Of a stretch of DNA of 64,000 nt, positions 25,431 through 64,000 are shown piece after piece. The DNA comes from Anaeramoeba ignava BMAN. Taxonomy: Eukaryota; Protista; Anaeramoebae. Position numbers and translations under genes: made by a program. The stretch is from assembly GCA_028826165.1 (NCBI GenBank), contig JAPDFW010000127.1, positions 1-64,000 on the forward strand, read 5' to 3'. Within the stretch, counting starts at the first letter, position 1. Every line of letters starts with the position of its first letter. The notes beneath the pieces were generated by a model. That model worked only from the letters and a program-made list of their open reading frames with translations, did not search any database and was not told the origin of the DNA.

Positions 25431-27212
25431 TTAATTTTCGTTTTGATTAATAAATTGGTTAATTAATAAATCTAATAAATTTGGATGTGTTTGATTTAAT
25501 TGAAAATAGTCAATTCCTGTTTTAATTTCATCAATAATTTCTTCTGTAATTTGAATTTCTTCTTGGATTTCATTTGAATAAATCCAATATTCTAATATTT
25601 GAAACGATTCATCACTTAATTCACTATAATCTGTAACTTTATTGGATGTATCTTCAGTTACAGATAAAAACATTCCTCGATATAATTCACTTCTCATTAT
25701 TAATATTAATTTGGGAAATTTAATTTGGTTTTCATTTCTTTCAATTATAAAATCTTTTTCATTTTCATTTAAATAAATGCTTTTTATTGTTTCTTCAATT
25801 TTTTCATTTGAATTTACAATTTCTTTAATTTCTGAATATAATATTGGATTTATTGTGAAATTGTTTGAATAAATCATTTCAAATATTTGATTTGCTTCTT
25901 GGATTGATTTTTTTGAAATAATTTTTTGAAGTCTCTCAATTTGATATTCATAATGATTTAATCTATATTTCAATATTAATTTATGAGCTTCAATTATTTC
26001 TTCATTTTGAGCTTTAAATGAAATGTTGCAAAATTCTTTTCTTTGATAAAGCTTAATCAAATCTTCTTCGAGATTGGAAAAACGGAGGAGGAGAATAATA
26101 AAGAAATGATTTCTTTTCTCCACAAAAAACATGATAATTAGAAATATCATCTTTAAATCTTAATTCAGGAAGTTCAATTTGAATTGGAATAAATTGCTTT
26201 TCTCGATTTCCATTTCCTAATTGGCCATAAGGATTACTTCCGAATCCTATCATTCTCCCCTTTTCTGTTAAAATCAAGGTATGAAGATTGCCAACAAAAA
26301 ACTCACGAATATTATCATTTTCAAATAAAGGTGATTTGATTTCAGTGAATTTATAAGTAACTTGATATCTGCCAAGCCCATTAAATTCATTGAATCCACA
26401 CGAGTAAAGTTTTGTTTTTGGATTTTGGTTCTCATCTTCATCCTCAATCAACATTAATGAATGTAAATTTCCCATTTGAATATCAATTATTTTGCCTTTT
26501 GGAAGGTTTTTGATTTGAGTAAAATTGATGATGCTTGTGGGTTCATTTCTCGATTCTATTAACCCGAGTTGACCAAAAAGATTATTTCCGCAACTAAATA
26601 ATTCTTCGTTTGAATCCAAAAGAAAAACGGAATAAGAAAAAGTATTTGTGAAAACTCTTGTTATATTGCTCATCATAAAAATTGGCTTTTTTGCTGTTTT
26701 TGGATCTTCAAAACCAAATTGGGCATGAGAATTTAAACCGATTCCGTAAACATTTTGATTTGAAGTTAGTAAGAAAATTGATTCTGCACCAGAAACTACA
26801 TCTTCAATTATTCTGTCATTTGGGTCTTCAATTAGTGATGAAATTTTGATAAATTCATTTGGATTTTTTCGATTGATATATTTTCCTTTTGCAAATACTT
26901 TTCCTTTTGAAGTTAAAACGGCCTCATTATCAGAACCAAGAGTTACTTTTTCAATATTTTCAATTTGGATTTTTTCAGGATTTTGATTTGAATCATTTTC
27001 TGTATATTTTATTGCTTTTCCGTTTTGAAAAAGGAAAATTGTTGTGGTTTGATTTGCTGAGATTTGTTTAATTCGTTTAATTTCATTTTCATTTTCATTT
27101 TCAATTAGATTTAGATTTGGAAAATTAAATTTAATTGGTCTTGTTATTTGGTATGGTTCATTTACGAAAAGTTTTGGAAATTCATTTTTACCGAAATATA
27201 AAATTTCATCCA
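25431..27212 (-). CDS. RCC1-BTB protein, paralogue 2 (frameshift ~26080)
   Basis: Same architecture as paralogue 1; an extra T in a homopolymer at the RCC1/BTB boundary. Confidence 0.85.
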
Positions 27213-27263: not shown

Positions 27264-29022
27264 TTATTTCCTTTTTCTCTTTATTTTTTGATTATTAAAT
27301 TTTTTAATTAATAAATCTAATAAATTTGGATTTGTTTGATTTAATTGAAAATAATCAATTCCTCTTTTAAGTTCATTGATTATTTCTTGTGTAATTTGAA
27401 TTCTTTTTTTAATTTGATTTGAATAAATCCAATATTCAAAAATTTGGAATGATTTATTACTTAATTCACTATAATCTGTAACTTTATTGGATTTATCATT
27501 TGTTACAGATAAAAACATTCCTCGATATAATTCACTTCTCATTATTAATATTAATTTGGGAAATTTAATTTGATTTTCTTTTCTTTCAATTATAAAATCT
27601 TTTTCATTTTCATTTAAATAAATGCTTTTCATTGTTTCATTTATTCGTTCTTCATTTATAATTTCTTTAATTTCAGAATATAATTTTGAGTTTATGATTA
27701 TGTTTGAATAAATCATTTCAAATATTTGATTTGATTCTTGAACTGATTTTTTTGAAATAATTTTTTGAAGTTTTTCAATTTTGATTTTGATCTTTTAATC
27801 TATATTTCAATATTAATTTATGAGCTTCAATTATTTCTTCATTTTGAGCTTTAAATGAAATATCACAAAATTCTTTTCTTCTAAATAGTTTTATCAAATC
27901 TTCTTCAAGATTGGAAAAAGAAGGAGAAGAATAATAAAGAAATGAATTGTGAAATCCACAACAAATATGATAATTAGAAATATTAGACGATATTTCTGGA
28001 ATTTTAATCTGAATTGGTTTTGGTTGATCTCTTGTATTTCCAATTCCTAGCTGGCCATGACTATTCCATCCGAATCCGATGAGCTTTCCGTTTGCGGTTA
28101 AAACCAAAGTATGATTCCATCCAACAGAAAAATCAAGAATATTATCATTTTTAAATAGAGGTGATTTGATTCCAGTAAATTCAGAAGTATTTTTCTTTTT
28201 GCCTAGACCTGTATATTCATAATTCCCGCATGAATAAAGTTTTCTCGTTCCTTTTTGCTCGATTAACATGATTGTGTGATAAAATCCTGATTGAATATCG
28301 ATTATTTTGCCTTTTGGGATATTTTGTATTTTGGTTAATTTTTTAACTTCTTTTTCTTTAATTTTGCCCAATCCAAGTTGGCTATAATCGTTATTTCCGC
28401 AAACAAATAATTCTTGATTTGAATTGAGAAGAAAAACATGATTTGCAAATTTCCCTGAAAATATTTTAGAAACATTTTTCATCATTAAAATTGGATTATT
28501 AAAAACTTGTTGAGAATCAAAACCAATTTGACCGAAAATATTTGAACCAATTCCATAAGCATTTTGATTTGAAGTTAGTAAATAAATTGAAATTTGACCG
28601 CAAACAATGTCTTGAATTATTATCTCATTTGGGTCTTCGATTGAATCTGATAAATTATTAAAAATATCGGGATTTTTTGTATTGACATATTTTCCTTTTG
28701 CAAATGCTTTTCCTTCTTTTGTTAAAATTGCTAAATGAAAAGCGCCAACCGACACTTTTTGGATATTTTCAATTTCGATTTTTTGAGGTTTTGGTAAATT
28801 TTGTGAATATTCTATTGCTTGATAATTTTGTTCATGAATTATTATTACAAAATTCGTGATTATTATTTTCTCAATTTCAGTTGTTTGATGGAAATTATTT
28901 AACTGAATTGGTTTGATTATATTTGGATGATAATCGTATATCATCATAAATGCAAAATTATTTTCTCCAAAAAACCAAATATCATTATTTTGTTTTTTAT
29001 TTTGTTTTTGATAATTTTGCAT
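27264..29022 (-). CDS. RCC1-BTB protein, paralogue 3 (frameshift ~27778)
   Basis: Same architecture; an extra A in CAAAATTGAAAA. Confidence 0.85.
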
Positions 29023-44240: not shown

Positions 44241-44539
44241 TTTTTATCCAAGTATTTTAATTTTTAATTCAAAAATTTTTTAATTTTAATTTATTTAAAA
44301 TTTATTTAAAATTTAATTTAGGATTTTCTCCTTTAATTATTTCTTCCTTTTCCTTTCTCTCTCTCTTTTTTTCTTTTGGGTTTCACTTCTGTTGAATTTT
44401 TTTTTTGGAAATTTTAATACAAAAAAAGAAAACAGTTTGTGAATAATTAAAACAATTTTTTTCTTTGGATTTGATTTGATTTGATTTGATTTGAGTAAAA
44501 TGAAAAATTTGAACAACAAAACAATTTTCTCAATTTTTG

Positions 44540-45700
44540 GATTTTAAAAAAGATTTTATTATTATTTTACAATAAAATTAATTAAGAAATAATTTTAAAA
44601 AAGAATTTATTATTAATATTAAATTATTATTATTAAAAATAAAGAAATAAAATTATTAAAATATTTTATTTATTATTTTATTTAATTTTTAATTACAATT
44701 TATTTATTATTTTACAATAAAATTAATTAAGAAATAATTTTAAAAAAGAATTTATTATTAATATTAAATTATTATTATTAAAAATAAAGAAATAAAATAA
44801 TTAAAATATTTTATTTATTATTTTATTTAATTTTTAATTATAATTTATTTATTATTTTGCAATAAAATTAATTAAAAATAATTTTAAAATTTATTATTAT
44901 TAAAATAATTAAAATATTTTATTTATTATTTTATTTAATTTTTAATAACAATTTATTTATTATTTTACAATAAAATTAATTAAGAAATAATTTTAAAAAG
45001 AATTTATTATTAATATTAAACTATTATTATTAAAAATAAAGAAATAAAATTAATTAAAAATATTTTTATTTATTATTTTATTTAATTTTTAATTACAATT
45101 TATTTATTATTTTGCAATAAAATTAATTAAAAATAATTTTAAAAAGAATTTATTATTAATATTAATTCAAAACTATTAAAATAATTAAAATATTTTATTT
45201 ATTATTTTATTTAATTTTTAATTACAATTTATTATTTTACAATAAAATTAATTAAGAAATAATTTTTAAAAAGAATTTATTATTAATATTAAATTAAAAT
45301 TATTAAAAATAAAGAAATAAAATTATTAAAATAATTTATTATTTTAATTTTTTAAAAATTATTATTTAAAAAAGAATTTATTTATTAATATTAAATTAAA
45401 ATTATTAAAATATTTTATTTATTATTTTATTTAATTTTAATTATAATTTATTATTTTGCAATAAAATTAATTAAGAAATAATTTCAAAAAGAATTTATTA
45501 TTAATATTAAATTATTATTATTAAAAATAAAGAAATAAAATTATTAAAATATTTTATTTATTATTTTATTTAATTTTTAATTACAATTTATTTATTATTT
45601 TGCAATAAAATTAATTAAGAAATAATTTTAAAAAAGAATTTATTATTAATATTAATTCAAAATTATTAAAAATAAAGAAATAAAATTATTAAAATATTTT
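44540..45700. repeat. AT-rich tandem repeat, unit roughly 130-150 bp, upstream of kinase gene A
   Basis: Recurring ACAATAAAATTAATTAAGAAATAATTTTAAAAAAGAATTTATTATTAATATTAA; related units occur at ~55270-55450 and ~59950-60130. Confidence 0.85.
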
Positions 45701-45816: not shown

Positions 45817-48800
45817 ATGAAAGAACCAGAAATTTGTCCAATTTGTTTTAAAAATTATTCAAATGAAAGAAAACCAATGATTATTTGCAAAAAAAGTCAC
45901 AATATTTGTTCTCTTTGCACAACAAAAATGGATCATTGCATTTTTTGTCAAAGTTCATTTAATCATTTCAAACCATTTGTGAATGAATCTTTATTGAAAT
46001 TTATTAAATCAATTCAAAAAAAAGCAAATGAACAAATTATTCCATTTATTCCAATTTCAGAATTAGAAATTAAATCAGAACCTTTTGCTACAGGAGGAAC
46101 TGCTCAAATGTTCAAAGCAAAATGGAAAGGAAAAGATGTTGCTATCAAAAGATTAATGTTTCTAAATGATCCAAAAAAAAATCAACAATTTGAAAACGAA
46201 ATTAAATTAGGAATGAAATTAGATCATCCTCATATTATCAAAACGTATGGAAAAACTCAAATGGATACTGTTTTGGGGATTATAATGGAATATGCAGAAC
46301 AAGGAGATTTATCTAAAAAAATTCCAAATTTAAAATATGAAGAACAAATTGAATATTCTTTACAAATTATTGAAGGAATTGAAGTTTTACATTCAAATTT
46401 AATTATTCATCGTGATTTGAAACCTGAAAATATCTTAATATCAAATAATCAAGCAAAAATTACTGATTTTGGAATTTCAAAAGTAAGAGAACACACTTTA
46501 CAAGTTACTTCAGCTATAGTTTCACTTGGTTATTCTGCTCCAGAAATGTTTGAACAAGGAAAAAAATATGATAATTCTTGTGATATTTTCAGTTTATCAA
46601 TGATTTTATATGAAATTTTCTCAAAGAAAAAAGCTTTTGAAAATATAAAACCTGTAATGATTCCACTCAAATTAATACAAGGAGAAAGACCTGAATTTCC
46701 AAATAATTTCCCAAAAGAATTAAGTGAATTAATTAAAAAAGGATGGAGTTCAAATCCAAAAGAAAGATGTTCATTAAATGAATTTACTGAATGTTTAAAT
46801 ATGATGAAAAATAGAAGTAATTTTTAATTTTTAAATCAAAATAATTTCTTTTCCAAATCTCATCATTTTTTTTTTCAATTTAATTCATTCAAAAAAAAAA
46901 AATCAAAATCGAAATCAAAAAACCAAAACTATTTTTTTCACAAATTTGTTTACAAATACAAACTAATCAAAATCAAAAAAAACGAATCAAACACAAATAT
47001 TTCATCAATTACTTTATTTTAATCAAATTTCTAATAATAATTTTGGGAATCAATTTCAAGAAAATCAAAATGTATTTATAATTTTATTTCCAAAAATAAA
47101 TAATCAAATAAATTATTTAATAATAACAAAAATATCTAAATTTAAAAATATAAATTAATTTATAATTTGATTTTAAAAAAATTTTTTAGATTTCAAAATT
47201 ATCTCAAAATGAAAACCAAGAAATTTGTCCAATTTGTTTTAAAAATTATTCAAATGAAAGAAAACCAATGATAATTTGTCAAGAAAGTCATAATATTTGT
47301 GTTCATTGTGTCAAAACACTTAACAGTTGTCCTTTTTGTAAAAGTTCATTTAATCATTTCAAACCAATTGTGAATGAATCTTTATTATCCTTTATTAAAT
47401 CAATTCAAAAAAATACAAATGAACAAATTATTCCATTTATTCCAATTTCAGAATTAGAAATTAAATCAGAACCTTTTGCTACAGGAGGAACTGCTCAAAT
47501 GTTCAAAGCAAAATGGAAAGGAAAAGATGTTGCTATCAAAAGATTAATGTTTCTAAATGATCCAAAAAAAAATCAACAAATTGAAAATGAAATTAAATTA
47601 TCAATGAAATTATCACATCCTCATATTATCAAAATGTATGGAAAAACTGAAATGGATAATAAGATGGGGATTATAATGGAATATGCAGAACAAGGAGATT
47701 TATCTAAAAAAATTCCAAATTTAAAATATGAAGAACAAATTGAATATTCTTTACAAATTATTGAAGGAATTGATTATTTACATTCAAATTTAATTATTCA
47801 TCGTGATTTGAAACCTGAAAATATCTTAATATCAAATAATCAAACAAAAATTACTGATTTTGGAATTTCAAAAGTAAGAAAACACACTTTACAAGTTACT
47901 TCAGCTATTATTTCACTCCATTATTCTGCTCCAGAAATGTTTGAACAAGGAAAAAAATATGATAATTCTTGTGATATTTTCAGTTTATCAATGATTTTAT
48001 ATGAAATTTTCTCAAAGAAAAAACCTTTTGAAAATGAAAATTTTGCGATGATTTCACTCAAATTAATACAAGGAGAAAGACCTGAATTTCCAAATAATTT
48101 TCCCAAAAGAATTAAGTGAATTAATCAAAAAAGGATGGAGTTCAAATCCAAAAGAAAGATGTTCATTAAATGAATTTACTGAATGTTTGAATATGATGAA
48201 AAATAAAAGTAATTTCAATATTTAATTAAATGAAAAACTAAACAAAATTAAAATTAAAATTAAAATTAAAATTAAAATTAAAATTAAAATTAAAATTAAA
48301 ATTAAAATTAAAATTAAAATTAAAATTAAAATTAAAATTAGGACCAAAACCAAAAATAAAACGAGAACTGAAACCAATAATAGATTCAATAATAGATTCA
48401 AAACAAAAAATAAAAACAGTCGATTTGAGTGTAAAACATTGATATTTAAAAATATGAAAAAAAAAAAGAATTAAATTTTCAATAATTTCCATTTCAAAAA
48501 AATAATACAATAAAATCAGGATTCTCAAAAAACACTCGATGAACTAATAACAACAGTACGAACTTTGGAAATCCAAAAAGAAAAAAAACAAAAATCTCGA
48601 GAAGCAAAAAAAAATGCATTCAAAGAACTTAAACCTTATTTTCAAAAACTTCGAGATTCAATTCGCAAACATGATGAAAGTAAATATTTATCCATATTGT
48701 TTAAATCAAATGAAAAAATGTGTAAAATGAATTAATTCAATCCATTTCATTTTTTTTAATTAAAAGATAACTTAGAAAAATTAGAAGAAATTGATATTGA

Positions 48801-51800
48801 TTTTATTTTTCAATCTATGAATGCTTTTCCAATATATCAATTTATTCAAGAAAGTTGTTGTATGGCTATAAGAAAATTCACTGAAACCGAAACAAGTACA
48901 AATTGTTAAATCCATTTTAATTTTCAAAATTCTATTAATTTTTCTTTCCAAAAAAAAAAAAAAAGGAATTTCATTTGATTTTTCAGATTTTAATGGATTT
49001 GATTTAGTTATCAAAGCAATGAATAATTTCCCATTCAAAAGATTTCTCCAACTTCAATCTTTGTTAATTTTTATTCAAATGGGAAAATCAAGTTGTAAAT
49101 TTAATTTTAATCCAAAAAACAAAAAATTTAATTAATCCAAAAAAACAAAAAATTAATCCAAAAAACAAAGCAAATAGAAGCCAAATTAAACGCTATTCTG
49201 GACCTGATACAATATTTTCAACAATCACTAATTTTCCACAAGATAATGATATTTTTCGTACAGGATATGAAGCTTTAAAAACTTTAGAATTTGGTCAAAA
49301 TCGTAAATTTACATTTTTCAATTAAAAAACAAAATAAATAATTCAATCTTTTTTTTCTTTTTTCATTTTAATAATTAATTTTCCTTTCTTTTATTTTAAT
49401 CAAATTATTTGAAAAACAAATAGATATTACTTACAACCTTAATTTAAAGAAAAGTACAAATTTTATTTCATTTTTCCAAAACCAAAAACAAAAAAAAATT
49501 ATAATTTGAAAAATTATGAAATTATTTTTATTAGATCATGTGGAAAAAAGAGAACGAGAGAAATTAAAATCATTACAAACAGAATTTGATAAAACAAAAT
49601 ATGTAAATCACATATTTTTAACAGGAATTTATTCATTTATTTATTCATTTATCATTCATTTTTCTTTCTTTTTTTTAAATAGTTTTTTGATTTTTGGTCA
49701 CAAGTAAACTTCCTTTCTTCCAAATAATTTGATTAAAATAAGAGGAAAATTCATTTAATCAACATTTCAAACAATTTTTGTTTTTTTTTTTTGATTTATT
49801 TTTGATTAAAAATTTTAGGAATCTTTATTTCATTTCTATGCAAAAAAGAACGAAGAACTTGATTTTGGAATTTTACAAATTTTTTTGAAAAAAAAATCAG
49901 ATATCACTAAACTCGATGTATAAATTATTTTATCCAAATTTCTAAAACAAAACATAACAATTTTTTTCTTATTAAATTTTAATTCCTTTTTTTTTAAAAA
50001 AAAATATTAAAATTATAAAAATCTAGAAAGTAATTCTAAATCAAAAAAATAAATACTTGACTAAATTTTTCAACTCATTTTAATCTCTTTTATTTATTTT
50101 GTAGACTATATTCCAAAAAAAAGCAGATGTACAAAAAGCAATTTTATCAAAATATTTTCTTGAATTTATTTGAATTTATTTATATTGTTTTTTTTAGAAA
50201 GTAATTCATATTTTAATTTTATTTAGAAAGAAAATTCTCATTTTTTCTTTTATTTTTCTTCTTCTTTAAATATTTAAAAAGAATACACCAATTCATTATT
50301 TATGTCAAAATGAATCAATTAATTTGAGGATAATAAAATTAATGTGCGATTATAAGGCTAATTTTAATTTGAAAGGAGTAAATTTTGGATTTTATTTTTT
50401 TTTCTTATTAATCCTAAAAATATTCATTTCTTTCTTTCTTAAAAAAAAATTAAAAATTTTTAGACAGTAAAATATAAATATCATTAAAAAATTGAAATAA
50501 CAAATAATCTAAAACAAATTGAAATCAAAACAAAAAGAATGTAAAATTAAAAAATATTTATAAATTGAATTGAATGAAAAATTTATACATTTATAAAATG
50601 ATTGAGATAGGAAGTAAAAAATAAAATAAAATAAAATAAAAATTCAATTATTTATCTCAAATTCTTTTCAATTAAATTATTTAAAAAATCAAAGTTAACA
50701 CCATTACATTATTTATGCCAAAATCCATCAATAAATTTCAAAATCATTAGATTATTAGCAAATCATAAAGCCGATTTTACTTTTAAAGGAGTAAATTTAT
50801 TTTTAATTAATTTTTAATTTATTTTTAATTTATTTTATTAATAATTGAATAGAAAGTAATCTCATTAATTTAAATTAACAAAATTCCTTTATTATTTTCT
50901 GAAATTCCAAAAAAAAAATTTAAAACAAATTGAAATCAAAACAAAAAGAATGTAAAATTAAAAAATATTTATAAATTGAATTGAATGAAAAATTTATTCA
51001 TTTATAAAATGATTGAGATAGGAAGTAAAAAATAAAATAAAATAAAATAAAAATTCAATTATTTATCTCAAATTCTTTTCAATTAAACTATTTAAAAAAT
51101 CAAAGTTAACACCATTACATTATTTATGCCAAAATCCATCATTAAATTTGGAAATCATTACATTATTAGCAAATCATAAAGCCGAGTTTACTTCTAAAGG
51201 AGTAAATTTATTTTTAATTTATTTTTAATTCATTTTTAATTTATTTTATTAATAATTGAATAGAAAGTAATCTCATTAATTTAAATTAACAAAATTCCTT
51301 TATTATTTTCTGAAATTCCAAAAAAAAAAGGATGTAAAAATATTCTTTTTTTTTTTTTTGCTTCTTAAAATCTTAAAAAAAAATTCATAAAAAAAAAAGG
51401 AAGTAAAAATATAATAAAAATAAAAATAATAGAAACTAAATTTACAAAAAAAAATAAACAAAAAAAAGGATACACCAATACATTACCTTTTTCAAAATCC
51501 ATCAATAACAACAGAGATTATTAAATTCTTCATTGAAAAAGGATATAGTTTTGATACTCAAAATGTAAGTAAATAAATATTTAATTTACACTTCTTTTGA
51601 AATAAAGTTTTTGATAAATTTTTCAAAATTATTTCCCAAATAGAGTGTAAAAAATATCATTTCAAGATGATCAAAAAAAAGTTCATTTTTCTTTTCATTC
51701 CATTTTTTTATATGGGAAATAGTTTGTAAAAATTTAACTATTTTTAAATTCAAAAAAAAAATGAATTAAAATTAAATTTGAATTTGAAATTTAATTGTTT

Positions 51801-54669
51801 CTTTTCCTCAAAACTCATTTTTAGCAAGTAATTCATTTTTTTCTTCATCTTCACATAATTTTTCAATAATATTAATTTAACATTTCTCATATAATTCCAA
51901 AAGATGTCTCCTATTCATTATTTGTGTAAAAACCCATCAATTACATTTGAAATGATTTATGCATTAGTTCAAAGTGGAGTAATTAATTGGAATTTAGGTG
52001 GAGTAAGTTTTTATTTCTTAAATTTTTATTAAAAATAATAAACACATCATTTAATAACAAAATAATTTTAGCAAGTAAACTATTTAAAGAGGAAAAAAAA
52101 TGGTTTTTCTCTAATAATATTATTAAAATATAATTAAATGTATTAGCAAGTAAATACTCTTTCAAAATTTCATTCCTTTTCATTCCTTTTTATTTTTCAA
52201 TCCAAAAAAAAATAGGATGTAAAAATTATTTTTATTAATAAATAAATTCTGTTTTTATTTTCTAAATGATAATAAAAATAATAAAAATAACAATAGAATG
52301 TAAATCATTTAAATTTATTCCTTCTTCTTTTATGTTAAATATTAATTTGTTTTTGAAATGATTTTTTTTGTTTTAATAAAATAGCATGTAAATAATTTAT
52401 CGAAAATTACTTATTAAACATCAATTATAATTTCCCCTATAAAAAAAATAATAAAATTTAAAATTAGTTTGTAAAAAAAATATATATAATTAAACATTTT
52501 TTTTATTGATAAAAATTTTGAATTAATTAATTATTCCAAAAAATAAACAAATAGGATGTAAAATAAAACAATAGAAAAACATTTTTTTTAATTTATTCAA
52601 TATTAAAATTATTTTATTATTTTTTTTTACATATAAAAAAGCATACACCTTTACATGATTTATGTATCAATACTTCAGTTACCAAAGAAATTATTAAAAT
52701 ATTAATTAATAATGGAGCTGATTTTCATATTCAATGGGTAAAAATTTATAAAAAACAATTTAAAATTATATTAAATTTTGATTTAATTTTTATATAAATT
52801 AAATAGAAAGTAAATTATTTATATCATCTCAATATTTTTTATATTTTTGTTATTAAATCCTTTTTCAATCTTCTCTTTTGCTTTTTTCTTGAAAAATAAT
52901 AACAAATAGATTGTAAAATAATTAATAAAAATAAACAAAAATAAATTTAAAATTAATCATAAAATTTGTTTTTCTGATTAATTTTTATGAAACAGAAAGT
53001 AAATTAAAAATTATATAAAATTTTTTTTGGAATGATTTCTTTGTATTTAATAGAATATTTTAACAAATAGGAAGTAAAATTAGAAATTTTTAAAGAAAAA
53101 TTTAACTAAATTAAAATTTATAATAGAATGTAAATAATCTTTTTTTTTTTGATTTAATAATTAATTTAATTATTTTTTCTTTATAAATAATCAGGCAGTA
53201 ATCATTTAAAATTTTAATTAAAATGGAAAAGAAAAATCTTATTTAAGATTAAAAATTAAATTGAAATCAAGTTAGTACGTAAATCAAATTAATAAAAAAT
53301 AATGATACAATATTTATTTTTCTTACTTAAATTCTAAATAAAATAGTTTGTAAATTTTGATTTATTTTTTAATTTTGAGCAATTATTGAAAAATAAAAAT
53401 ACTTAAATTGAATCAATAGAGAGTAATAAATTATATTTAAATCATTTTCCTTTTTTCTTTTCAATAAAAAAAATTAAATAAAAAAAATTTAGGGAGTAAA
53501 TAAATTCAAAACAAAAACAAAAATAATTTCAAATAACAATAATTTAAATAATTTTCTTCATATTTTTTTTAGTATTCTCCACTTCATTTTTTATGTTTGA
53601 GCCACGTAATTACAACAGAAATAATTGATATTTTGATTCAAAATCAAGCAAATTTCAATTTACAAATTGTAAAAATCAATTTAATTATTTTCCTTTGATA
53701 ATTATTCAAATTTTTTATTTGGATTGAAAATTATTAAACAGATTGTAAATAAATCCTTTATTAATTAAAAAAAAATTTTTTAAAATTGAAGTTTAAATCT
53801 CATTTAAATTCTAAATTCTAAAATTAAATAGGATGTAAATAAATATTATTTCCAAAACAAAAACTTCAAGTTTTCACTAAAATTTAACTTTAAATTTCAA
53901 TTTAATAAATAGGAAGTAAATAAATACAAAAATAAATTGATATTTTTAAATTTTCTTTTTCTTTTTTCTTAAAATAATTCTTTAATAGGAAGTAAAAAAA
54001 ATTTATTTAAAATTAATCTTGTTTTAATTGATTGTAAACATTTTAATTTGAAATTTTTCCAAAAATAAAAGGGAGTAAATGATAAATTTATTTAATTCTT
54101 TTTTTTAGAACAAATTAATTAAATTCATTTTTGATTTCAAAATAAATAATGAATAATTGATTAAATAGCAAGTAAATCAATTTAAAAAATTAAATTTTGG
54201 TTTACTTTTTATTATTAAATCCAATTATTTAGCCTGTAAATAATAAGATAAAATTTCCAAATAATAAATGAACTAATATTTAGATAATTTGAAAATTAAA
54301 TAGGGAGTAAATTTAATCTAAAAAAAAATAATCTAAAAATATCTTAAAATAATCTTAAAAATATCTAAAAAAAATATCTAAAAAAATATCTTAAAAAAAT
54401 AATCTAAAAAAATAATCTAAAAAAATAATCTAAAAAAATAATCTAAAAAAATATCTAAAAAATATCTAAAAAATAATCTAAAAATATAATCTAAAAAAAT
54501 ATATCTTTGTTTTTAGGCAACTGTATTGCATTGTCTTTGTCAAAATCCATTAATTTCAGAAGAAATGATCAAATTATTGAAAGGAAGCAATGCTGATTTT
54601 TCTATAAAGAGTTCTTATGGAACAACACCAAAAGATTTTCTTCCTAATCATCTTCAGAAACTGATTTAA
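45817..54669 (+). CDS. Gene A: RING-kinase-RING-kinase, ARM-like repeats, 9 ankyrin repeats with 3-nt microexon arrays
   Basis: Phase-compatible GT-AG exons: 45817-46816, 47061-47071, 47190-48208 (1-nt frameshift ~48100), 48342-48430, 48520-48679, 48767-48895, 48966-49094, 49171-49302, 49424-49453, 49535-49602, 49683-49703; ankyrin exons 49819-49917, 50282-50377, 50695-50790, 51106-51201, 51469-51564, 51904-52002, 52642-52737, 53573-53668, 54517-54669(stop). TPLH-type motifs in each ankyrin exon. Confidence 0.8.
50027..54306 (+). other. Eight arrays totalling 39 single-codon (3-nt) microexons between ankyrin exons
   Basis: AG|NNN|GTA units mostly ~60-110 nt apart. Arrays read K,(24-nt TIFQKKAD),K / T,N,E / K,N,E / K,D,E / S,F,Q / Q,Q,D,N,H,F,D / K,I,K,E,N,A,Y,F,R,G / I,D,E,E,G,Q,P,G. 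None is a stop codon. Confidence 0.85.
50500..51320 (+). repeat. 411-bp tandem duplication of one ankyrin exon plus its microexons
   Basis: Constant 411-nt offsets: 50538/50949, 50611/51022, 50695/51106, 50853/51264. Confidence 0.92.
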
Positions 54670-54764
54670 AAACAAAAACAAATGATTTTTCTTTTCATTT
54701 TTTTTGGCACATTACAATTTAATTAATTTTTTTCCTTTGAATTTTGTTGGATTGGAAATCAAGT

Positions 54765-55130
54765 TCAATTTCAATTTCAAATTCAATTTCAATTTCAAAT
54801 TCAATTTCAAATTCAATTTCAATTTCAAATTCAATTTCAATTTCAAATTCAATTTCAATTTCAATTTCAATTTCAAATTCAATTTCAAATTCAAATTCAA
54901 TTTCAATTTCAATTTCAAATTCAATTTCAAATTCAAATTCAATTTCAATTTCAATTTCAATTTCAAATTCAATTTCAATTTCAATTTCAATTTCAATTTC
55001 AATTTCAAATTCAATTTCAAATTCAAATTCAAATTCAAATACAAATTCAATTTCAATTTCAAATTCAAATTCAAATACAAATTCAATTTCAATTTCAAAT
55101 TCAAATTCAATTTCAATTTCAATTTCAATT
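54765..55130. repeat. (AATTTC/AAATTC)n hexamer satellite, intergenic
   Basis: Directly visible; source of the NF/KL/SI ORFs. Confidence 0.93.
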
Positions 55131-55208
55131 AAGAAGAAGATTTTCCAATTTTTTTTACTAAATTTTTCTTTTTATTCTTCTTTTCTTCAAATTCAAAGAA
55201 GAATAAAA

Positions 55209-56034
55209 AAATTTCAAAATTCAAAAACACAAAATTATTTTCTAAATTTTTGGATTAAATTATTTTTGAATTTTAAAAAAGAATTTATTATTAATATTAA
55301 ATTAAAATTATTAAAAATAATGAAATAAAATTAATTAAAATATTTTATTTATTATTTTATTTAATTTTTAATTATAATTAATTTATTATTTTACAATAAA
55401 TTTAATTAAGAAATAATTTTAAAAAAGAATTTATTATTAATATTAAATTAAAATTGATTTAAAAATATAAATTTAAATTGAAAAAAAAATAAAAAAAGAA
55501 AATAATTGTAAATTATAAAAAGATTTTATATTCTTAAATTAATAAGAAAATTAATTATAAAAATATAATTATATGTAAATATATTATTTATTATTTACAA
55601 TAATATTATTTATTATTATATATTATTTATCATTTAAAAAAAGAAAATTGATTTTTAATTGATTAAAAATTTGATATTATTTTTTTTACTCTTTTAAATT
55701 TACAAAAAAATAACAAAAATAAAACAATTTAAATTATTCTTTATATTTTATATTCATTCCATTTATTTTATTTATTCCACTTTTTTTTTTTTTAATAAAT
55801 TTTGATCTAAAAATAAAAATAAAAAAGGAGAAAAAATAAAAAAAGGAGAAAAAAAATAATTTTTTTTTTTGGGATTTTAAAAAAAAAACAAAATTTTAAA
55901 TTAAAATTAAATTTAAAAAAAATGAAACATTCATTTTCCCTTTTTATTTTCATTTAATTTTTATTTCATTTAATTTTTATTTCATTTTCATTTAATTTCC
56001 TCTTTTTTTTTGTGTTTTTTTTTAATTTTTAAAC
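55209..56034. repeat. Upstream block duplicated near-identically at ~59889-60716
   Basis: The same ~830-bp sequence precedes ATGGAAGAACCAGAA at both 56035 and 60717. Confidence 0.9.
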
Positions 56035-59000
56035 ATGGAAGAACCAGAAATTTGTCCAATTTGTTTTAAAAATTATTCAAATGAAAGAAAACCAATGATG
56101 ATTTGTCAAGAAAGTCATAATATTTGTGTTCATTGTGTTAAAAAATTTAACAGTTGTCCTTTTTGTAAAAGTTCATTTAATCATTTCAAACCAATTCCAA
56201 ATTTAATTTTATTGAAATTTATTGGATCAATTCCAAAAAATACAAATGAACAAATTATTCCATTTATTCCAATTTCTGAATTAGAAGTTGAATCAAAACC
56301 TTTTGCTTCAGGAGGAACTGCTCAAATTTTCAAAGCAAAATGGAAAGGAAAAGATGTTGTTATCAAAAGAATAATGTTTTTGAATGATCCAAAAAAAAAT
56401 CAAAAATTCGAAAATGAAATTAAATTAGGAATGAAATTATTACATCCTCATATTATCAAAATGTATGGAAAAACTGAAAAAGATAATATGATTGGAATTG
56501 TAATGGAATATGCAGAACAAGGAGATTTATCTCAAAAAATTCCAAATTTAAAATATGAAGAACAAATTGAATATTCTTTACAAATTATCAAAGGAATTGA
56601 TTATTTACATTCAAATTTAATTATTCATCGTGATTTACAACCTGAAAATATCTTATTATCAAATAATCAAACAAAAATTGCAGGTTTTGGAATTTCAAAA
56701 GTAAGAGAATATAGTTTAAAAGTTTCTTTGTCTATAGTTTCACTTGGTTATTCTGCTCCAGAACTTTTTGAAAAAGGAAAAAAATATGATAATTCTTGTG
56801 ATATTTTCAGTTTATCAATGATTTTATATGAAATTTTCTCAAAGAAAAAAGCTTTTGAAAATGAAAATCAAATGCTAATTATTTACAAAGTAACGAAAGG
56901 AGAAAGACCTGAATTTCCAAATAATTTTCCAAAAGAATTAAGTGAATTAATCAAAAAAGGATGGAGTTCAAATCCAGAAGAAAGATGTTCATTAAATGAA
57001 TTTACTAAATGTTTAAATATGATGAAAAATAAAAGTAATTTTTAATTTTTAAATCAAAACAATTTCTTTCCAAATCTCATCATTTTTTTTTTCAATTTAA
57101 TTCATTCAAAACCAAAAACCAAAAAAAAACGAATCAAACACAAATATTTCATCAATTACTTTGTTTTAATCAAATTTCTAACAATAATTTTGGGAATCAA
57201 TTTCAAGAAAATCAAAATGTATTTATAATTTTATTTCCAAAAATAAATAATCAAATAAATTAGTTAATAATAACAAAAATATCTAAATTTAAAAATATAA
57301 ATTAATTTATAATTTGATTTTAAAAAATTTTTTAGATTTCAAAATTATCTCAAAATGAAAACCCAGAAATTTGTCCAATTTGTTTTAAAAATTATTCAAA
57401 TGAAAGAAAACCAATGATAATTTGTCAAGAAAGTCATAATATTTGTGTTCATTGTGTTAAAAAATTTAATAGTTGTCCTTTTTGTAAAAGTTCATTTAAT
57501 CATTTCAAACCATTTGTGAATCATCCCTTCTTGAAATTTATTGGATCAATTCCAAAAAATACAAATGAACAAATTATTCCATTTATTCCAATTTCTGAAT
57601 TAGAAGTTGAATCAAAACCTTTTTCTTCAGGAGGAACTGCTCAAATTTTCAAAGCAAAATGGAAAGGAAAAGATGTTGTTATCAAAAGAATAATGTTTTT
57701 GTATGATCCAAAAAAAAATCAACAATTCGAAAATGAAATTAAATTAGGAATGAAATTATTACATCCTCATATTATCAAAATGTATGGAAAAACTGAAAAA
57801 GATAATATGATTGGAATTGTAATGGAATATGCAGAACAAGGAGAATTAAAACAAAAAATTCCAAATTTAAAATATGAAGAACAGATTGAATATTCTTTAC
57901 AAATTATCAAAGGAATTGAAGTTTTACATTCAAATTTAATTATTCATCGTGATTTGAAACCTCAAAATATCTTAATATCAAATAATCAAGCAAAAATTAC
58001 TGATTTTGGAATTTCAAAAATAAGAGAATATAGTTTAAAAGTTTCTTCAGCTATTATTTCACTTGGTTATTCTGCTCCAGAACTTTTTGAAAAAGGAAAA
58101 AAATATGATAATTCTTGTGATATTTTCAGTTTATCAATGATTTTATATGAAATTTTCTCAAAGAAACAACCTTTTGAAAATGAAAATGAAATGCTAATTA
58201 TTTACAAAGTAGTGAAAGGAGAAAGACCTGAATTTCCCAATAATTTTCCAAAAGAATTAAGTGAATTAATCAAAAAAGGATGGAGTTCAAATCCAAAAGA
58301 AAGATGTTCATTAAATGAATTTACTAAATGTTTAAATATGATGAAAAATAAAAGTAATTTTTAATTTTTAAATCAAAACAATTTCTTTCCAAATCTTATC
58401 ATTTTTTTTTTCAATTTAATTCATTCAAAAAAAAAATCAAAAATCAAAATCAAAAAACCAAAACTATTTTTTTCACAAATTTGTTTACAAATAGAAATTC
58501 CAAAACTGAAAAAAACGAATCAAAGGCAAATCTCAGGAAAGAAAAAAGAATTTTATCCATCAAAACTTTCAATTAATCAAAAAAGCAATGAAACGAATCT
58601 TCAACAAGGAAATAGATCAAATTTGGGTGACTCTTATGATCAATCAGAAAAATTAACAATATCAAAAACTCCCACAAATCCAACAGGAAATACACGCCAA
58701 AATTTAAGTTCAAATCTAAAAGGAAACGGAAGATTAAGTCGAAGAGCAAATCCAAGAGCAAATCCAAGAGCAAATCCAAGAGTAAGTCCAACAGGAAATA
58801 GAATCAATCCAAGAACAAATCCAAGAACAAATCCAACAGGAAATAAAATCAATCCAAGAACAAATCCAAGAGGAAGTCCAATGAATATAAGAACAAATAC
58901 AAGAGGAAGTCCAAGAGTAAGTCCAACAGGAAATAAAATCAATCCAAGAGGAAGTCCAATGAATATAAGAACAAATACAAGAGGAAATCCAAGAGTAAGT

Positions 59001-59747
59001 CCAACAGGAAATAGAATCAATCCAAGAGGAAGTCCAATGAATATAAGAACAAATACAAGAGGAAGTCCAAGAGTAAGTCCAACAGGAAATAAAATCAATC
59101 CAAGAACAAATCCAATGAATATAAGAGCAAATCCAAGAACAAGTCCAAGAGTAAGTCCAACAGGAAATAAAATCAATCCAAGAGCAAATCCAAGAACAAA
59201 TCCAACAGGAAATAAAATCAATCCAAGAACAAATCCAAGAACAAATCCAAGAACAAATCCAAGAACAAATCCAATGAATATAAGAACAAATACAAGAGGA
59301 AGTCCAAGAGTAAGTCCAACAGGAAATAGAATCAATACAAGAGGAAGTCCAAGAGCAAATCCAACAGGAAATAAAATCAATCCAAGAACAAATCCAAGAA
59401 CAAATCCAAGAACAAATCCAAGAACAAATCCAATGAATATAAGAACAAATACAAGAGTAAGTCCAAGAGTAAGTCCAACAGGAAATAAAATCAATACAAG
59501 AGGAAGTCCAAGAGCAAATCCAACAGGAAATAAAATCAATACAAGAACAAATTCAAGATCAAGTTCAAGAGGAAATACAACAAGTCCAAGAATTAGTCAA
59601 AATTCACATTTAAGAACAAATTCAAATCTAAGAACAAGTCCACAAATTAGTACAAATATCAATCCAAGAGGAAATCCAACAGGACGACCTAGAGCAAATA
59701 CAAACATAAGATTTTCCAAATTCTCGAACAACATTCACAAAAAATAA
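56035..59747 (+). CDS. Gene B: RING-pseudokinase-RING-kinase with an Arg/Asn/Pro-rich repeat tail
   Basis: Exons 56035-57034, 57208-57218, 57336-58353, 58495-59747, all phase-compatible. Domain 1 has HRDLQPEN and AGFG; domain 2 has HRDLKPQN and DFG. Confidence 0.78.
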
Positions 59748-60716
59748 GAATCCAAGCAAATGTTTTTTTCATTTAATTCTCGTTTTCTTTTTTTTGAATT
59801 TTTTTAATCCAGAAAAAAAATAAAACTCTCAATTTCAGATTTTCTCATTCCAATCCAAAAATTATTCGAAAGAAAATTACTCTAAAAAAATTTCAAAATT
59901 CAAAAACACAAAATTATTTTCTAAATTTTTGGATTAAATTATTTTTGAATTTTAAAAAAGAATTTATTATTAATATTAAATTAAAATTATTAAAAATTAT
60001 GAAATAAAATTAATTAAAATATTTTATTTATTATTTTATTTAATTTTTAATTATAATTAATTTATTATTTTACAATAAATTTAATTAAGAAATAATTTTA
60101 AAAAAGAATTTATTATTAATATTAAATTAAAATTGATTTAAAAATATAAATTTAAATTGAAAAAAAAATAAAAAAGAAAATAATTGTAAATTATAAAAAG
60201 ATTTATATTCTTAAATTAATAAGAAAATTAATTATAAAAATATAATTATATGTAAATATATTATTTATTATTTACAATAATATTATTTATTATTATATAT
60301 TATTTATCATTTAGAAAAAGAAAATTGATTTTTAATTGATTAAAAATTTGATATTATTTTTTTTACTCTTTTAAATTTACAAAAAAATAACAAAAATAAA
60401 ACAATTTAAATTATTCTTTATATTTTATATTCATTCCATTTATTTTATTTATTCCACTTTTTTTTTTTTTAATAAATTTTGATCTAAAAATAAAAATAAA
60501 AAAGGAGAAAAAATAAAAAAAGGAGAAAAAAAATAATTTTTTTTTTTGGGATTTTAAAAAAAAAAAGAAACAAAATTTTAAATTAAAATTAAATTTAAAA
60601 AAAATGAAACATTCATTTTCCCTTTTTATTTCATTTAATTTTTATTTCATTTAATTTTTATTTCATTTTCATTTAATTTCCTCTTTTTTTTTTGTTTTTT
60701 TTTTTAATTTTTAAAC

Positions 60717-63700
60717 ATGGAAGAACCAGAAATTTGTCCAATTTGTTTTAAAAATTATTCAAATGAAAGAAAACCAATGATGATTTGTCAAGAAAGTCAT
60801 AATATTTGTGTTCATTGTGTTAAAAAATTTAACAGTTGTCCTTTTTGTAAAAGTTCATTTAATCATTTCAAACCAATTCCAAATTTAATTTTATTGAAAT
60901 TTATTGGATCAATTCCAAAAAATACAAATGAACCAATTATTCCATTTATTCCAATTTCAGAATTAGAAGTTGAATCAAAACCTTTTGCTTTTGGTGGATT
61001 TGCTCAAATTTTCAAAGCAAAATGGAAAGGAAAAGATGTTGTTATCAAAAGGTTAATGCTTATGGATAATCCAAAAAATAATCAACAATTCGAAAATGAA
61101 CTTAAATTAGGAATGAAATTATCACATCCTCATATTATCAAAATGTATGGAAAAACTGAAAAAGATAATATGATTGGAATTGTAATGGAATATGCAGAAC
61201 AAGGAGATTTATCTCAAAAAATTCCAAATTTAAAATATGAAGAACAAATTGAATATTCTTTACAAATTATTAAAGGAATTGAAGTTTTACATTCAAATTT
61301 AATTATTCATCGTGATTTGAAACCTGAAAATATCTTAATATCAAATAATCAAGCAAAAATTACTGATTTTGGAATTTCAAAAGTAAGAGATCACAGTTTA
61401 CAAGTTACTTCAGCTATTATTTCAATTGGTTATTCTGCTCCAGAACTTTCTGAAAAAGGAAAAAAATATGATAATTCTTGTGATATTTTCAGTTTATCAA
61501 TGATTTTATATGAAATTTTCTCAAAGAAAAAAGCTTTTGAAAATGAAAATCATCTGCAATTATTGGGATCATTAATGAAAGGAGAAAGACCTGAATTTCC
61601 CAATAATTTTCCAAAAGAATTAAGTGAATTAATCAAAAAAGGATGGAGTTCAAATCCAAAAGAAAGATGTTCATTAAATGAATTTACTAAATGTTTAAAT
61701 ATGATGAAAAATAAAAGTAATTTTTAATTTTTAAATCAAAATAATTTCTTTCCAAATCTTATCATTTTTTTTTTCAATTTAATTCATTCAAAAAAAAAAT
61801 CAAAAATCAAAATCAAAAAACCAAAACTATTTTTTTCACAAATTTGTTTACAAATAGAAATTCCAAAACCGAAAAAAACGAATCAAACACAAATATTTCA
61901 TCAAATAGACAATTCTAATCAAATTTCTAACAATAATTTTGGGAATCAATTTCAAGAAAATCAAAATGTATTTATAATTTTATTTCCAAAAATAAATAAT
62001 CAAATAAATTATTTAATAATAACAAAAATATCTAAATTTAAAAATATAAATTAATTTATAATTTGATTTTAAAAAATTTTTTTAGATTTCAAAACTATCT
62101 CAAAATGAAAACCCAGAAATTTGTCCAATTTGTTTTAAAAATTATTCAAATGAAAGAAAACCAATGATAATTTGTCAAGAAAGTCATAATATTTGTGTTC
62201 ATTGTGTTAAAAAATTTAACAGTTGTCCTTTTTGTAAAAGTTCATTTAATCATTTCAAACCAATTCCAAATTTAATTTTATTGAAATTTATTGGATCAAT
62301 TCCAAAAAATACAAATGAACCAATTATTCCATTTATTCCAATTTCAGAATTAGAAGTTGAATCAAAACCTTTTTTTATTGGTGGATTTGCTCAAATTTTC
62401 AAAGCAAAATGGAAAGGAAAAGATGTTGTTATCAAAAGAATGATGTTTTTGTATGATCCAAAAAATAATCAACAATTCGAAAATGAAATTAAATTAGGAA
62501 TGAAATTATTACATCCTCATATTATCAAAATGTATGGAAAAACTGAAATGGATAATATGATTGGAATTGTAATGGAATATGCAGAACAAGGAGAATTAAA
62601 ACAAAAAATTCCAAATTTAAAATATGAAGAACAAATTGAATATTCTTTACAAATTATCAAAGGAATTGATTATTTACATTCAAATTTAATTATTCATCAT
62701 GATTTGAAACCTCAAAATATCTTATTATCAAATAATCAAACAAAAATTGCAGGTTTTGGAATTTCAAAAGTAAGAGATCACAGTTTACAAGTTTCTTCAG
62801 TTATAGTTTCACTTGGTTATTCTGCTCCAGAACTTTTTGAAAAAGGAAAAAAATATGATAATTCTTGTGATATTTTCAGTTTATCAATGATTTTATATGA
62901 AATTTTCTCAAAGAAAAAAACTTTTGAAAATGAAAATGCAATGGAGATTACATTCAAATTAATGAAAGGAGAAAGACCTGAATTTCCCAATAATTTTCCA
63001 AAAGAATTAAGTGAATTAATCAAAAAAGGATGGAGTTCAAATCCAAAAGAAAGATGTTCATTAAATGAATTTACTAAATGTTTAAATATGATGAAAAATA
63101 AAAGTAATTTTTAATTTTTAAATCAAAATAATTTCTTTCCAAATCTTATCATTTTTTTTTTCAATTTAATTCATTCAAAATCAAAAACCAAAAACGAATC
63201 AAACACAAATATTTCATCAAATAGACAATTCTAATAAGATTTCTAATAATAATTTTGGGAATCAATTTCAAGAAAATCAAAATGTATTTATAATTTTATT
63301 TCCAAAAATAAATAATCAAATAAATTATTTAATAATAACAAAAATATCTAAATTTAAAAATATAAATTAATTTATAATTTGATTTTAAAAAATTTTTTTA
63401 GATTTCAAAACTATCTCAAAATGAAAACCCAGAAATTTGTCCAATTTGTTTTAAAAATTATTCAAATGAAAGAAAACCAATGATAATTTGTCAAGAAAGT
63501 CATAATATTTGTGTTCATTGTGTTAAAAAATTTAACAGTTGTCCTTTTTGTAAAAGTTCATTTAATCATTTCAAACCATTTGTGAATCATCCCTTCTTGA
63601 AATTTATTGGATCAATTCCAAAAAATACAAATGAACCAATTATTCCATTTATTCCAATTTCAGAATTAGAAGTTGAATCAAAACCTTTTTTTATTGGTGG

Positions 63701-64000
63701 ATTTGCTCAAATTTTCAAAGCAAAATGGAAAGGAAAAGATGTTGTTATCAAAAGAATGATGTTTATGGATAATCCAAAAAATAATCAACAATTCGAAAAT
63801 GAAATTAAATTAGGAATGAAATTATCACATCCTCATATTATCAAAATGTATGGAAAAACTGAAAAAGATAATATGATTGGAATTGTAATGGAATATGCAG
63901 AACAAGGAGATTTATCTCAAAAAATTCCAAATTTAAAATATGAAGAACAAATTGAATATTCTTTACAAATTATCAAAGGAATTGATTATTTACATTCAAA
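60717..64000 (+). CDS. Gene C: RING-kinase-RING-pseudokinase-RING-kinase..., 3'-truncated by the window
   Basis: Exons 60717-61716, 61858-61967, 62086-63103, 63225-63283, 63402->64000 in frame. Domain 2 has HHDLKPQN and AGFG. Confidence 0.8.

Follow-up and report, generated by a model that had tools for sequence, protein, structure and literature searches.

The RING-kinase locus of Anaeramoeba ignava

This study concerns a predicted gene at positions 45817-54669, on the forward strand, of a 64,000-nucleotide (nt) stretch that forms the start of contig C128 in the Anaeramoeba ignava BMAN assembly (C128:1-64000; 42.8 Mb and 147 contigs in total), hereafter the window. In this gene, a head composed of a RING and a protein kinase appears to be joined to a tail of ARM-like and ankyrin repeats. 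The G+C content of the window is about 18%, in line with the published composition of the BMAN genome, which is 80.65% A+T (PMC11550330). Seven copies of the RING-kinase head are present on the forward strand and fall into three groups, which we call units 1 to 3: A1 and B1 (starting at 45817 and 47190), A2 and B2 (56035 and 57336), and A3, B3 and B3' (60717, 62086 and 63402), with B3' extending past the end of the window. All seven copies are collinear across 332 codons.

Unit 1 opens with exon A1 (45817-46816), in which an ATG, a C3HC4 RING and a complete kinase 1 were recognized from the Pfam Pkinase profile, the RING consensus, the kinase motifs including APE, and the donor at its end; if left unspliced, A1 meets a stop at 46825-46827. 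A candidate 11-nt mini-exon, which would lead from phase 1 to phase 0, lies at 47061-47071, followed by exon B1 (47190-48208), which contains the second RING and kinase 2, is preceded by a TTTTTTAG acceptor and ends in the phase-1 donor A|GTAATT. Alignment of the seven copies places a one-base insertion in a T4C3 run of B1, together with the TGA that results from it, at 48098-48119. The predicted tail begins behind a phase-1 acceptor with a basic linker (E1, 48342-48430) and continues with a coiled-coil-like exon (E2, 48520-48679), collinear with the public paralogue KAJ5069233.1 (P0002), and with the ARM-like exons E3 (48767-48895), E4 (48966-49091) and E5 (49171-49302), placed by tblastn collinearity with P0002. 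The initial annotation had described three ARM-like exons of 129-132 nt; all three are found, with sizes of 129, 126 and 132 nt. Connecting exons follow at 49424-49453 (E6), 49535-49602 (E7), 49819-49917 (E8, a degenerate ankyrin-like exon) and 50105-50128 (E9). The ankyrin array (50198-54669) is modelled with eight repeat exons, at 50282, 50695, 51106, 51469, 51904, 52642, 53573 and 54517, and 38 three-base exons, and closes with a TAA at 54667-54669.

A conserved phase-1 donor after the kinase

Every one of the seven kinase copies in the cluster ends in A|GTAATT, split after the first codon position, with a stop two to five codons further on. The donors lie, all on the forward strand, at 46816 (A1), 48208 (B1), 57034 (A2), 58353 (B2), 61716 (A3), 63103 (B3) and about 64419 (B3'). 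Because such a likeness within one cluster could stem from the shared ancestry of Ser-Asn-Phe codons, the survey was made family-wide, comparing 24 distinct family copies of 55-95% identity. In 19 of these 24 copies the sequence NGT-AA[T/A] stands exactly at the seventh codon past a conserved CL (Cys-Leu) motif, and among the 19 donor-bearing copies the base before GT and the sequence past GTAA vary freely. The remaining five copies have no GT at this place, and their frame runs on, intronless, into linker-like sequence. We read this pattern as the signature of a conserved phase-1 intron that has been lost in some copies; the likeness of the donors across the cluster is partly a matter of paralogy, yet it exceeds what paralogy accounts for. 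The claim of the initial annotation that complete kinase open reading frames (ORFs) end at a phase-1 donor with a stop soon after is thus borne out in 7/7 copies of the cluster and 19/24 family-wide.

The minus-strand paralogue KAJ5067461.1 (L031:6106-7674; C128 ~65700-70674) was used as the intronless counterpart in judging the donor; its kinase ORF runs without an intron into a linker of Arg-Thr/Ile-Ser-Pro-Asn (RxSPN) repeats, which is followed by an ankyrin array with three-base exons. The spliced junction of unit 2 (58353^58495) resembles the uninterrupted sequence of the intronless minus-strand paralogue just past the window, and the acceptor of E1 (48341/48342) aligns with the acceptor that leads from B2 into its linker (58494/58495).

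The A-type copies are complete ORFs with an ATG and a stop, and GTAATT may be just conserved Ser-Asn codons, so that each kinase ORF could be taken for an independent gene that ends at its own SNF stop, with the ARM/ankyrin part as a separate gene. We regard this as very unlikely: the donor is kept where the next residues are not, the B copies are without a usable start, and the public annotation contains no stand-alone 336-amino-acid (aa) model within the searched range of 185-588 aa. Two further observations that speak against independent genes come from the tail.

Proposed joining of head and tail

From the B1 donor at 48208 to the acceptor at 48342, and through every later exon to the TAA at 54667-54669, the phases are compatible and there are zero stops; the initial annotation had noted as much, and we find that it holds for the whole chain to 54669. 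Exons E1 and E2 are open yet lack an ATG altogether; the chain reaches its first Met only within ARM-like repeat 1. These open, conserved and Met-less exons count against independent genes. Exons E2-E8 are collinear, exon by exon, with residues ~400-660 of KAJ5069233.1, for which the public annotation gives one protein: a lone RING-kinase head, spliced at this same donor, and a tail. Public models of other paralogues also use this donor and reach tails that are significant in Pfam.

The second observation concerns the 3' flank. A 49-nt motif at 55252-55300 (forward strand) is repeated at 59931-59979, and a further occurrence behind unit 3, near 65530, was identified by reading. The motif has two exact matches in the window (0 expected), which stand after the tails of unit 1 and unit 2, and none was found after an individual kinase. 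That kinases are not followed by a common 3' flank counts against independent kinase genes, and since the flank follows tails only, the duplicated unit would have consisted of heads, tail and flank together. The family-wide donor, the Met-less tail exons, the collinear one-gene paralogue and the tail-only 3' flank support the view that each kinase ORF is an exon of a larger gene, and that kinase head and ARM-like/ankyrin part belong to a single gene. Positions 45817-54669 would accordingly be predicted to form one transcription unit.

One head or two

Inside this gene model, B1 can be placed in more than one way. In all B copies the frame opens at the TTTTTTAG acceptor, and the TAG of that acceptor serves as the in-frame stop. 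Their ancestral ATG is out of frame through a one-base deletion common to all four, and their first in-frame Met comes only past the first CxxC of the RING; therefore, the B copies cannot make a complete RING alone. B1, the product of a tandem duplication of the head exon inside the gene, has lost its in-frame start and, sitting behind an acceptor, is translatable only as an internal exon. The B copies have nevertheless stayed open, with 0 stops vs 8.9 expected over at least 138 substitution events (P ~1e-4), and all seven copies together have 0 stops vs 12.5 expected (P ~2e-6). The B copies are free of insertions and deletions in 987 nt except for the B1 insertion, whereas the spacers contain several. 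The open B frames favour translation as internal exons.

A1 can be joined to B1 in two ways, neither of which breaks the frame. In the public model, 46816 is spliced directly to 47221 (acceptor 47220/47221), and the initial annotation had proposed a route from 46816 through the mini-exon at 47061-47071 to the acceptor at 47189/47190. The mini-exon does exist as a candidate and restores the frame (KNQN); downstream of the A1 donor no AG precedes the one that forms its acceptor, and its donor (..CAAAAT|GTATTT) and the next TTTTTTAG acceptor are also used by the public three-head model P0164. The public 46816>47221 joint is equally in frame, so that the route proposed at first is one of two. Homology-supported introns at this locus have no other AG within 36 nt of the acceptor, and the acceptor at 47221 has an AG 31 nt upstream, a spacing that is suggestive, not decisive. 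The public record KAJ5067456.1 is A1 joined to B1, a product of 632 aa that ends at the frameshift stop at 48119, and P0164 (1316 aa, unit 3) joins three heads with the same exon and intron that we derived independently.

A third path skips B1. The direct joint 46816 to 48342 also leads from phase 1 to phase 1 in frame, and skipping is frame-neutral because the cassette, without the extra base, is a multiple of three. As assembled, it is the only path that is open from the ATG at 45817 to the TAA at 54669, and it comprises 932 codons. The insertion stops the two-head frame at 48119, and the full product would therefore have either one head and 932 aa or, should the extra base be an assembly error, two heads and ~1260-1275 aa.

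B1 reads TTTTCCC at 48098-48104, where A1 has TTTCCC and the other five copies have TTTTCC, and the consequence is an in-frame TGA at 48117-48119; a one-nucleotide insertion near 48100, as noted initially, is indeed present in the assembly. Here two homopolymers meet, in a segment that is 95% identical to A1, where short reads can mis-map, and the assembly was made from Nanopore reads, with Racon, Nanopolish and two Pilon rounds used for correction (PMC11550330). A comparable case exists elsewhere in the window, in an unrelated tandem family: compared with its neighbour at 27880-27930, an RCC1/BTB paralogue on the minus strand (26053-26150) has one T too many where a T run precedes CC. The resulting frameshift is the same kind of lesion as that of B1, and either systematic assembly error at homopolymers or parallel decay may be responsible. 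Internal stops occur in roughly an eighth of the family matches, which points to a real lesion, and the assembly contains no second haplotype copy of B1. We consider an assembly error and a real lesion about equally probable.

Three outcomes follow from the state of this base and of the B1 joints. Both heads and the tail could be parts of one protein of 1260-1275 aa, with the extra base at 48098-48104 an assembly error. The B exons have been held stop-free, B1 retains all catalytic and RING residues, public models already fuse two and three heads, and both the T/C homopolymer junction in a Nanopore-based assembly and the second extra base in a T run before CC, near 26080, speak for such an error; but decay is common in the family, given its share of matches with internal stops, and no second haplotype contig offers a comparison. 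We hold this outcome to be quite possible without being likely. A similarly tentative place belongs to the possibility that B1 is a dead or skipped cassette and that the functional product, arising through 46816^48342, is a RING-kinase-coiled coil-ARM-ankyrin protein of 932 aa with one head. Both splice sites are in phase 1 on a path that is open from ATG to TAA, the cassette length is divisible by three without the extra base, and P0002, the nearest paralogue with head plus ARM, is single-headed; on the other hand, the joint needs an intron of 1525 nt, where the other introns of the gene measure 53-216 nt, and it must pass over two good acceptors in between. Finally, a real frameshift with B1 always included would leave a truncated or decaying locus that makes only the 632-aa two-head protein, with the tail an untranslated relic. 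The public model does stop at 48119, and the ratio of nonsynonymous to synonymous divergence (dN/dS) is near 1, but the tail retains ~1.8 kb of coding sequence in 55 exons with no stop and no GT or AG lost; a relic would not be expected to look like this unless it had been damaged very recently. We consider a decaying locus improbable.

Taken together, the best explanation is, in our judgement, one gene at 45817-54669 in which a RING-kinase head is joined through a phase-1 intron to a swappable tail, and we hold this to be probable; from genomic sequence we infer the splicing as modelled. The initial annotation had described one RING-kinase-RING-kinase-ARM-ankyrin protein: head and tail in one gene remain, and the B1 insertion breaks the two-head frame as assembled.

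Several points weigh against this explanation. The joints rest on genomic sequence and on predicted gene models, which may share the same ORF logic, and the lone sequencing run found, of unknown kind, contained 23% of the sequence words. Lone ARM-like and ankyrin exons score under the Pfam cut-offs: single ankyrin exons reach 15-20 bits with Ank profiles (cut-offs 21-22), joined paralogue arrays reach 58-69.5 bits, and ARM_LRRK2 (PF23744, cut-off 26.2) gives 14.1 bits for E3, 24.8 for P0002 and 97.9 for the more distant paralogue P0003. If the insertion is real, the two-head form is cut short after 632 aa, just as the public model has it. The B copies could also be held open without translation, through gene conversion from A copies, and dN/dS values of 0.7-1.1 among the seven heads imply weak amino-acid constraint. 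The sole transcriptome-derived relative, EukProt P0012, proved to be a chimera of paralogues with an unrelated kinase and was set aside as uninformative on the joints.

Predicted three-base exons of the ankyrin array

Between the ankyrin exons, the model places 38 three-base exons (50198-54306, forward strand), each of the form AG|NNN|GTAA and each with its own intron of 53-100 nt, in runs of 1, 3, 3, 3, 3, 7, 10 and 8. The pattern AG-NNN-GTAAA has 37 matches in the window vs 5.25 expected, and 32 of them lie in the ankyrin array on the forward strand. The codon directly before two of the repeats is GGA (Gly), which fits the ankyrin motif G-x-T-P-L-H. The public models P0002 and P0164 are without three-base exons.

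Domains of the head

Domain scans were made with single exons or public paralogues. The Pfam Pkinase profile PF00069 (cut-off 31.7) scores A1 at 173.6 bits and B1 at 170.6 bits, and among solved structures the kinase comes nearest to TAK1/MAP3K7 (E 2e-34), with NEK1, CTR1 and ZAK next. In A1, B1 and A3 the VAIK Lys, HRD..K..N, DFG and APE are all unchanged, and in B2 the HRD Asp, the Lys of the catalytic loop and DFG persist, with KPQN replacing KPEN. The other three copies are motif-deficient: in A2 (DLQ, GFG), B3 (HHD, GFG) and B3' (DLQ, DFR), the Asp of DFG, the Arg of HRD or the Lys of the catalytic loop is gone. Units 2 and 3 thus pair motif-keeping kinases (B2, A3) with motif-deficient ones (A2, B3, B3').

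For the RING, a regular expression for the C3HC4 spacing C-x2-C-x(9-39)-C-x(1-3)-H-x(2-3)-C-x2-C-x(4-48)-C-x2-C matched in 7/7 copies. The Pfam RING profiles stay below their cut-offs (Sina_RING 20-23 bits vs 29.3, zf-RING_5 ~21 vs 27.9), and because these profiles are sub-threshold, the RING call rests on the Cys/His pattern. The initial annotation had seen no transmembrane segment, and we agree: the maximum 19-residue Kyte-Doolittle mean is 0.85, and no segment is membrane-like.

A family of heads on differing tails

The head, a C3HC4 RING and a TAK1-like (TKL) kinase in one exon, defines a lineage-specific family of at least 60 copies. By Pfam, sister genes carry on the same head tails of RhoGEF-PH, SH3-MyTH4-RhoGAP, SH3, a ubiquitin-like domain or TLDc; further sister tails consist of SH3 with ARM_LRRK2 (97.9 bits) and of a linker with ankyrin repeats. 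P0002 (KAJ5069233.1) has the same head, donor, linker logic and coiled-coil-ARM-ankyrin tail as unit 1 and differs by its single head. P0164 shares the head, the donor, the linker logic and the head-to-head joints and differs by its three heads and a Ser/Gln-rich tail. Several public names in this family ('palmitoyltransferase', 'aardvark' and 'ulk3', on P0001, P0002, P0005 and P0156) look like transferred misnomers, and Pfam finds no palmitoyltransferase domain in those RING-kinase proteins.

The heads have diverged in an uneven manner. Coding sequence differs 2-8 times more between units than the adjoining spacers do: the spacers at 46817-47189, 57035-57335, 61717-62085 and 63104-63401 differ by 1.4-5% vs 5-12% for the kinase exons, with a synonymous divergence (dS) of 0.06-0.16. 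Exons that change faster than spacers suggest diversifying selection or patchy gene conversion. The variation is concentrated in a hypervariable patch at residues 275-288 (46639-46680 in A1), where 30 of the 127 extra amino-acid states fall in 14 of the 297 sites (permutation p<5e-5), with up to seven residues among the seven copies at one site. By comparison with protein kinase A, this patch is presumably the docking surface of helix alphaG.

Other features of the cluster

Unit 2 (56035-59747, forward strand) comprises A2, B2, a 141-nt in-frame intron (58354-58494) and a tail of proline/arginine/threonine/asparagine-rich repeats (58495-59747), and no public gene model for it was found in the length ranges searched. 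Unit 3 (60717-64000+, forward strand) comprises A3, B3, B3' and a Ser/Gln-rich tail that runs past the end of the window. A p21-binding (CRIB/PBD) domain was considered for this tail; Pfam gives no match at E 0.001, and the domain is not claimed. A ciliate-type code was likewise considered for the stops and rejected, given 336-codon ORFs without TAA or TAG in DNA of 18% G+C and CAA = Gln. Intergenic tandem repeats of 145-146 nt lie upstream of A-type heads (44360-45692, 55254-55472 and 59933-60134) and carry a motif that is also present in the common 3' flank. Long microsatellites of the AATTTC type occupy 54700-55250.

Meaning of the proposed gene structure

Fusion of heads is already implicit in the public annotation, in its two-head and three-head models; the genome paper (PMC11550330) leaves it undiscussed, and the words 'kinase' and 'ankyrin' are absent from it. 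Four things are new here: a link that ties the heads, past the frameshift, to the ARM/ankyrin tail; a donor shared throughout the family; a cassette arrangement by which one-head or two-head products would both be possible; and the evolutionary pattern of the heads. In public records the three-base exons are missing and the locus is broken where a sequencing error may lie, so that the model proposed here would correct how the genes of this large, unstudied family are drawn in an anaerobic eukaryote of deep branching. A fusion of kinase, RING, ARM and ankyrin parts would, on its own, be ordinary domain shuffling. If the joints are true, A. ignava has RING-kinase proteins with one, two and three heads on swappable tails, a natural series useful for studying the origin of tandem kinases and pseudokinases, which is a live question for plant immune receptors. 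The array and the mini-exon, if true, would also test how the spliceosome handles exons of 11 nt and 3 nt.

Possible function and comparison with known systems

From the known roles of these domains, we infer that the product may act as a cytosolic scaffold with E3 ligase and kinase activity. Its tail would comprise a basic linker, a coiled coil, three ARM-like repeats and eight ankyrin repeats with loops spelled by the three-base exons; the ankyrin/ARM part would bind a partner, and the head would phosphorylate and/or ubiquitinate either that partner or itself. The initial annotation took the variable ankyrin array for the sensor, and the RING/kinase tandem for the effector, of a putative cytosolic receptor. 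Because sister genes carry differing tails, with small-GTPase and adaptor functions among them, the variety of tails on one head points to a general signalling module on swappable adaptor tails, and not specifically to a receptor.

Kinases fused to an ankyrin array are found in RIPK4, ANKK1, TNNI3K and ILK. These proteins have no RING, ARM segment or tandem head, and the likeness is one of architecture. LRRK2 and other ROCO proteins combine a TKL-type kinase with ARM and ankyrin repeats, and ARM_LRRK2 is the only Pfam family that touches the ARM-like exons here, with a score below its cut-off. LRRK2 and the ROCO proteins differ in possessing ROC-COR, LRR and WD40 parts that are not present here, and the order is reversed at our locus, where the kinase comes first; Pfam detects neither a ROC GTPase nor a COR domain in any exon or paralogue tail scanned.

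In Arabidopsis KEG, an E3 ligase, RING, kinase and ankyrin repeats occur in one polypeptide (construct region 'RKA', PMC3697954). KEG is cytosolic and its ankyrin repeats bind partners, but its resemblance to the locus is one of architecture only: KEG has HERC2-like repeats, one kinase and no ARM-like segment, and the kinase here is nearest to the TAK1 type. The exon-wise scans gave no Pfam match to HERC2-like repeats, and the gene ends at 54669, directly past the last ankyrin repeat.

Plant tandem kinase proteins of the RPG1, WTK and Pm57 type have at least two kinases in one cytosolic protein, often one active and one degenerate, and carry an added 'integrated' domain (PMC11153570, PMC13478195). 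They have no RING before each kinase, whereas here a RING precedes each; the tandem arrangement here, unlike theirs, appears to come from recent exon duplication in one protist lineage; and both kinases of unit 1 keep their motifs, unlike the active/degenerate pairs of plants. On a receptor-like reading, heads would have been duplicated as exons, some decaying to pseudokinase 'decoys', the alphaG docking surface would be hypervariable, tails would have been swapped between units, and the loops of the ankyrin tails would be spelled one codon at a time by three-base exons, with ligands that might come from prey, viruses or the sulfate-reducing symbionts of the amoeba. We give little credence to the idea that the C128 cluster is in this way a fast-diversifying, receptor-like family of a free-living protist that senses varied ligands and is convergent with the plant tandem-kinase immune receptors. 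The likeness to those receptors is drawn because the heads vary fast and because, in the cluster, active kinases stand paired with degenerate ones.

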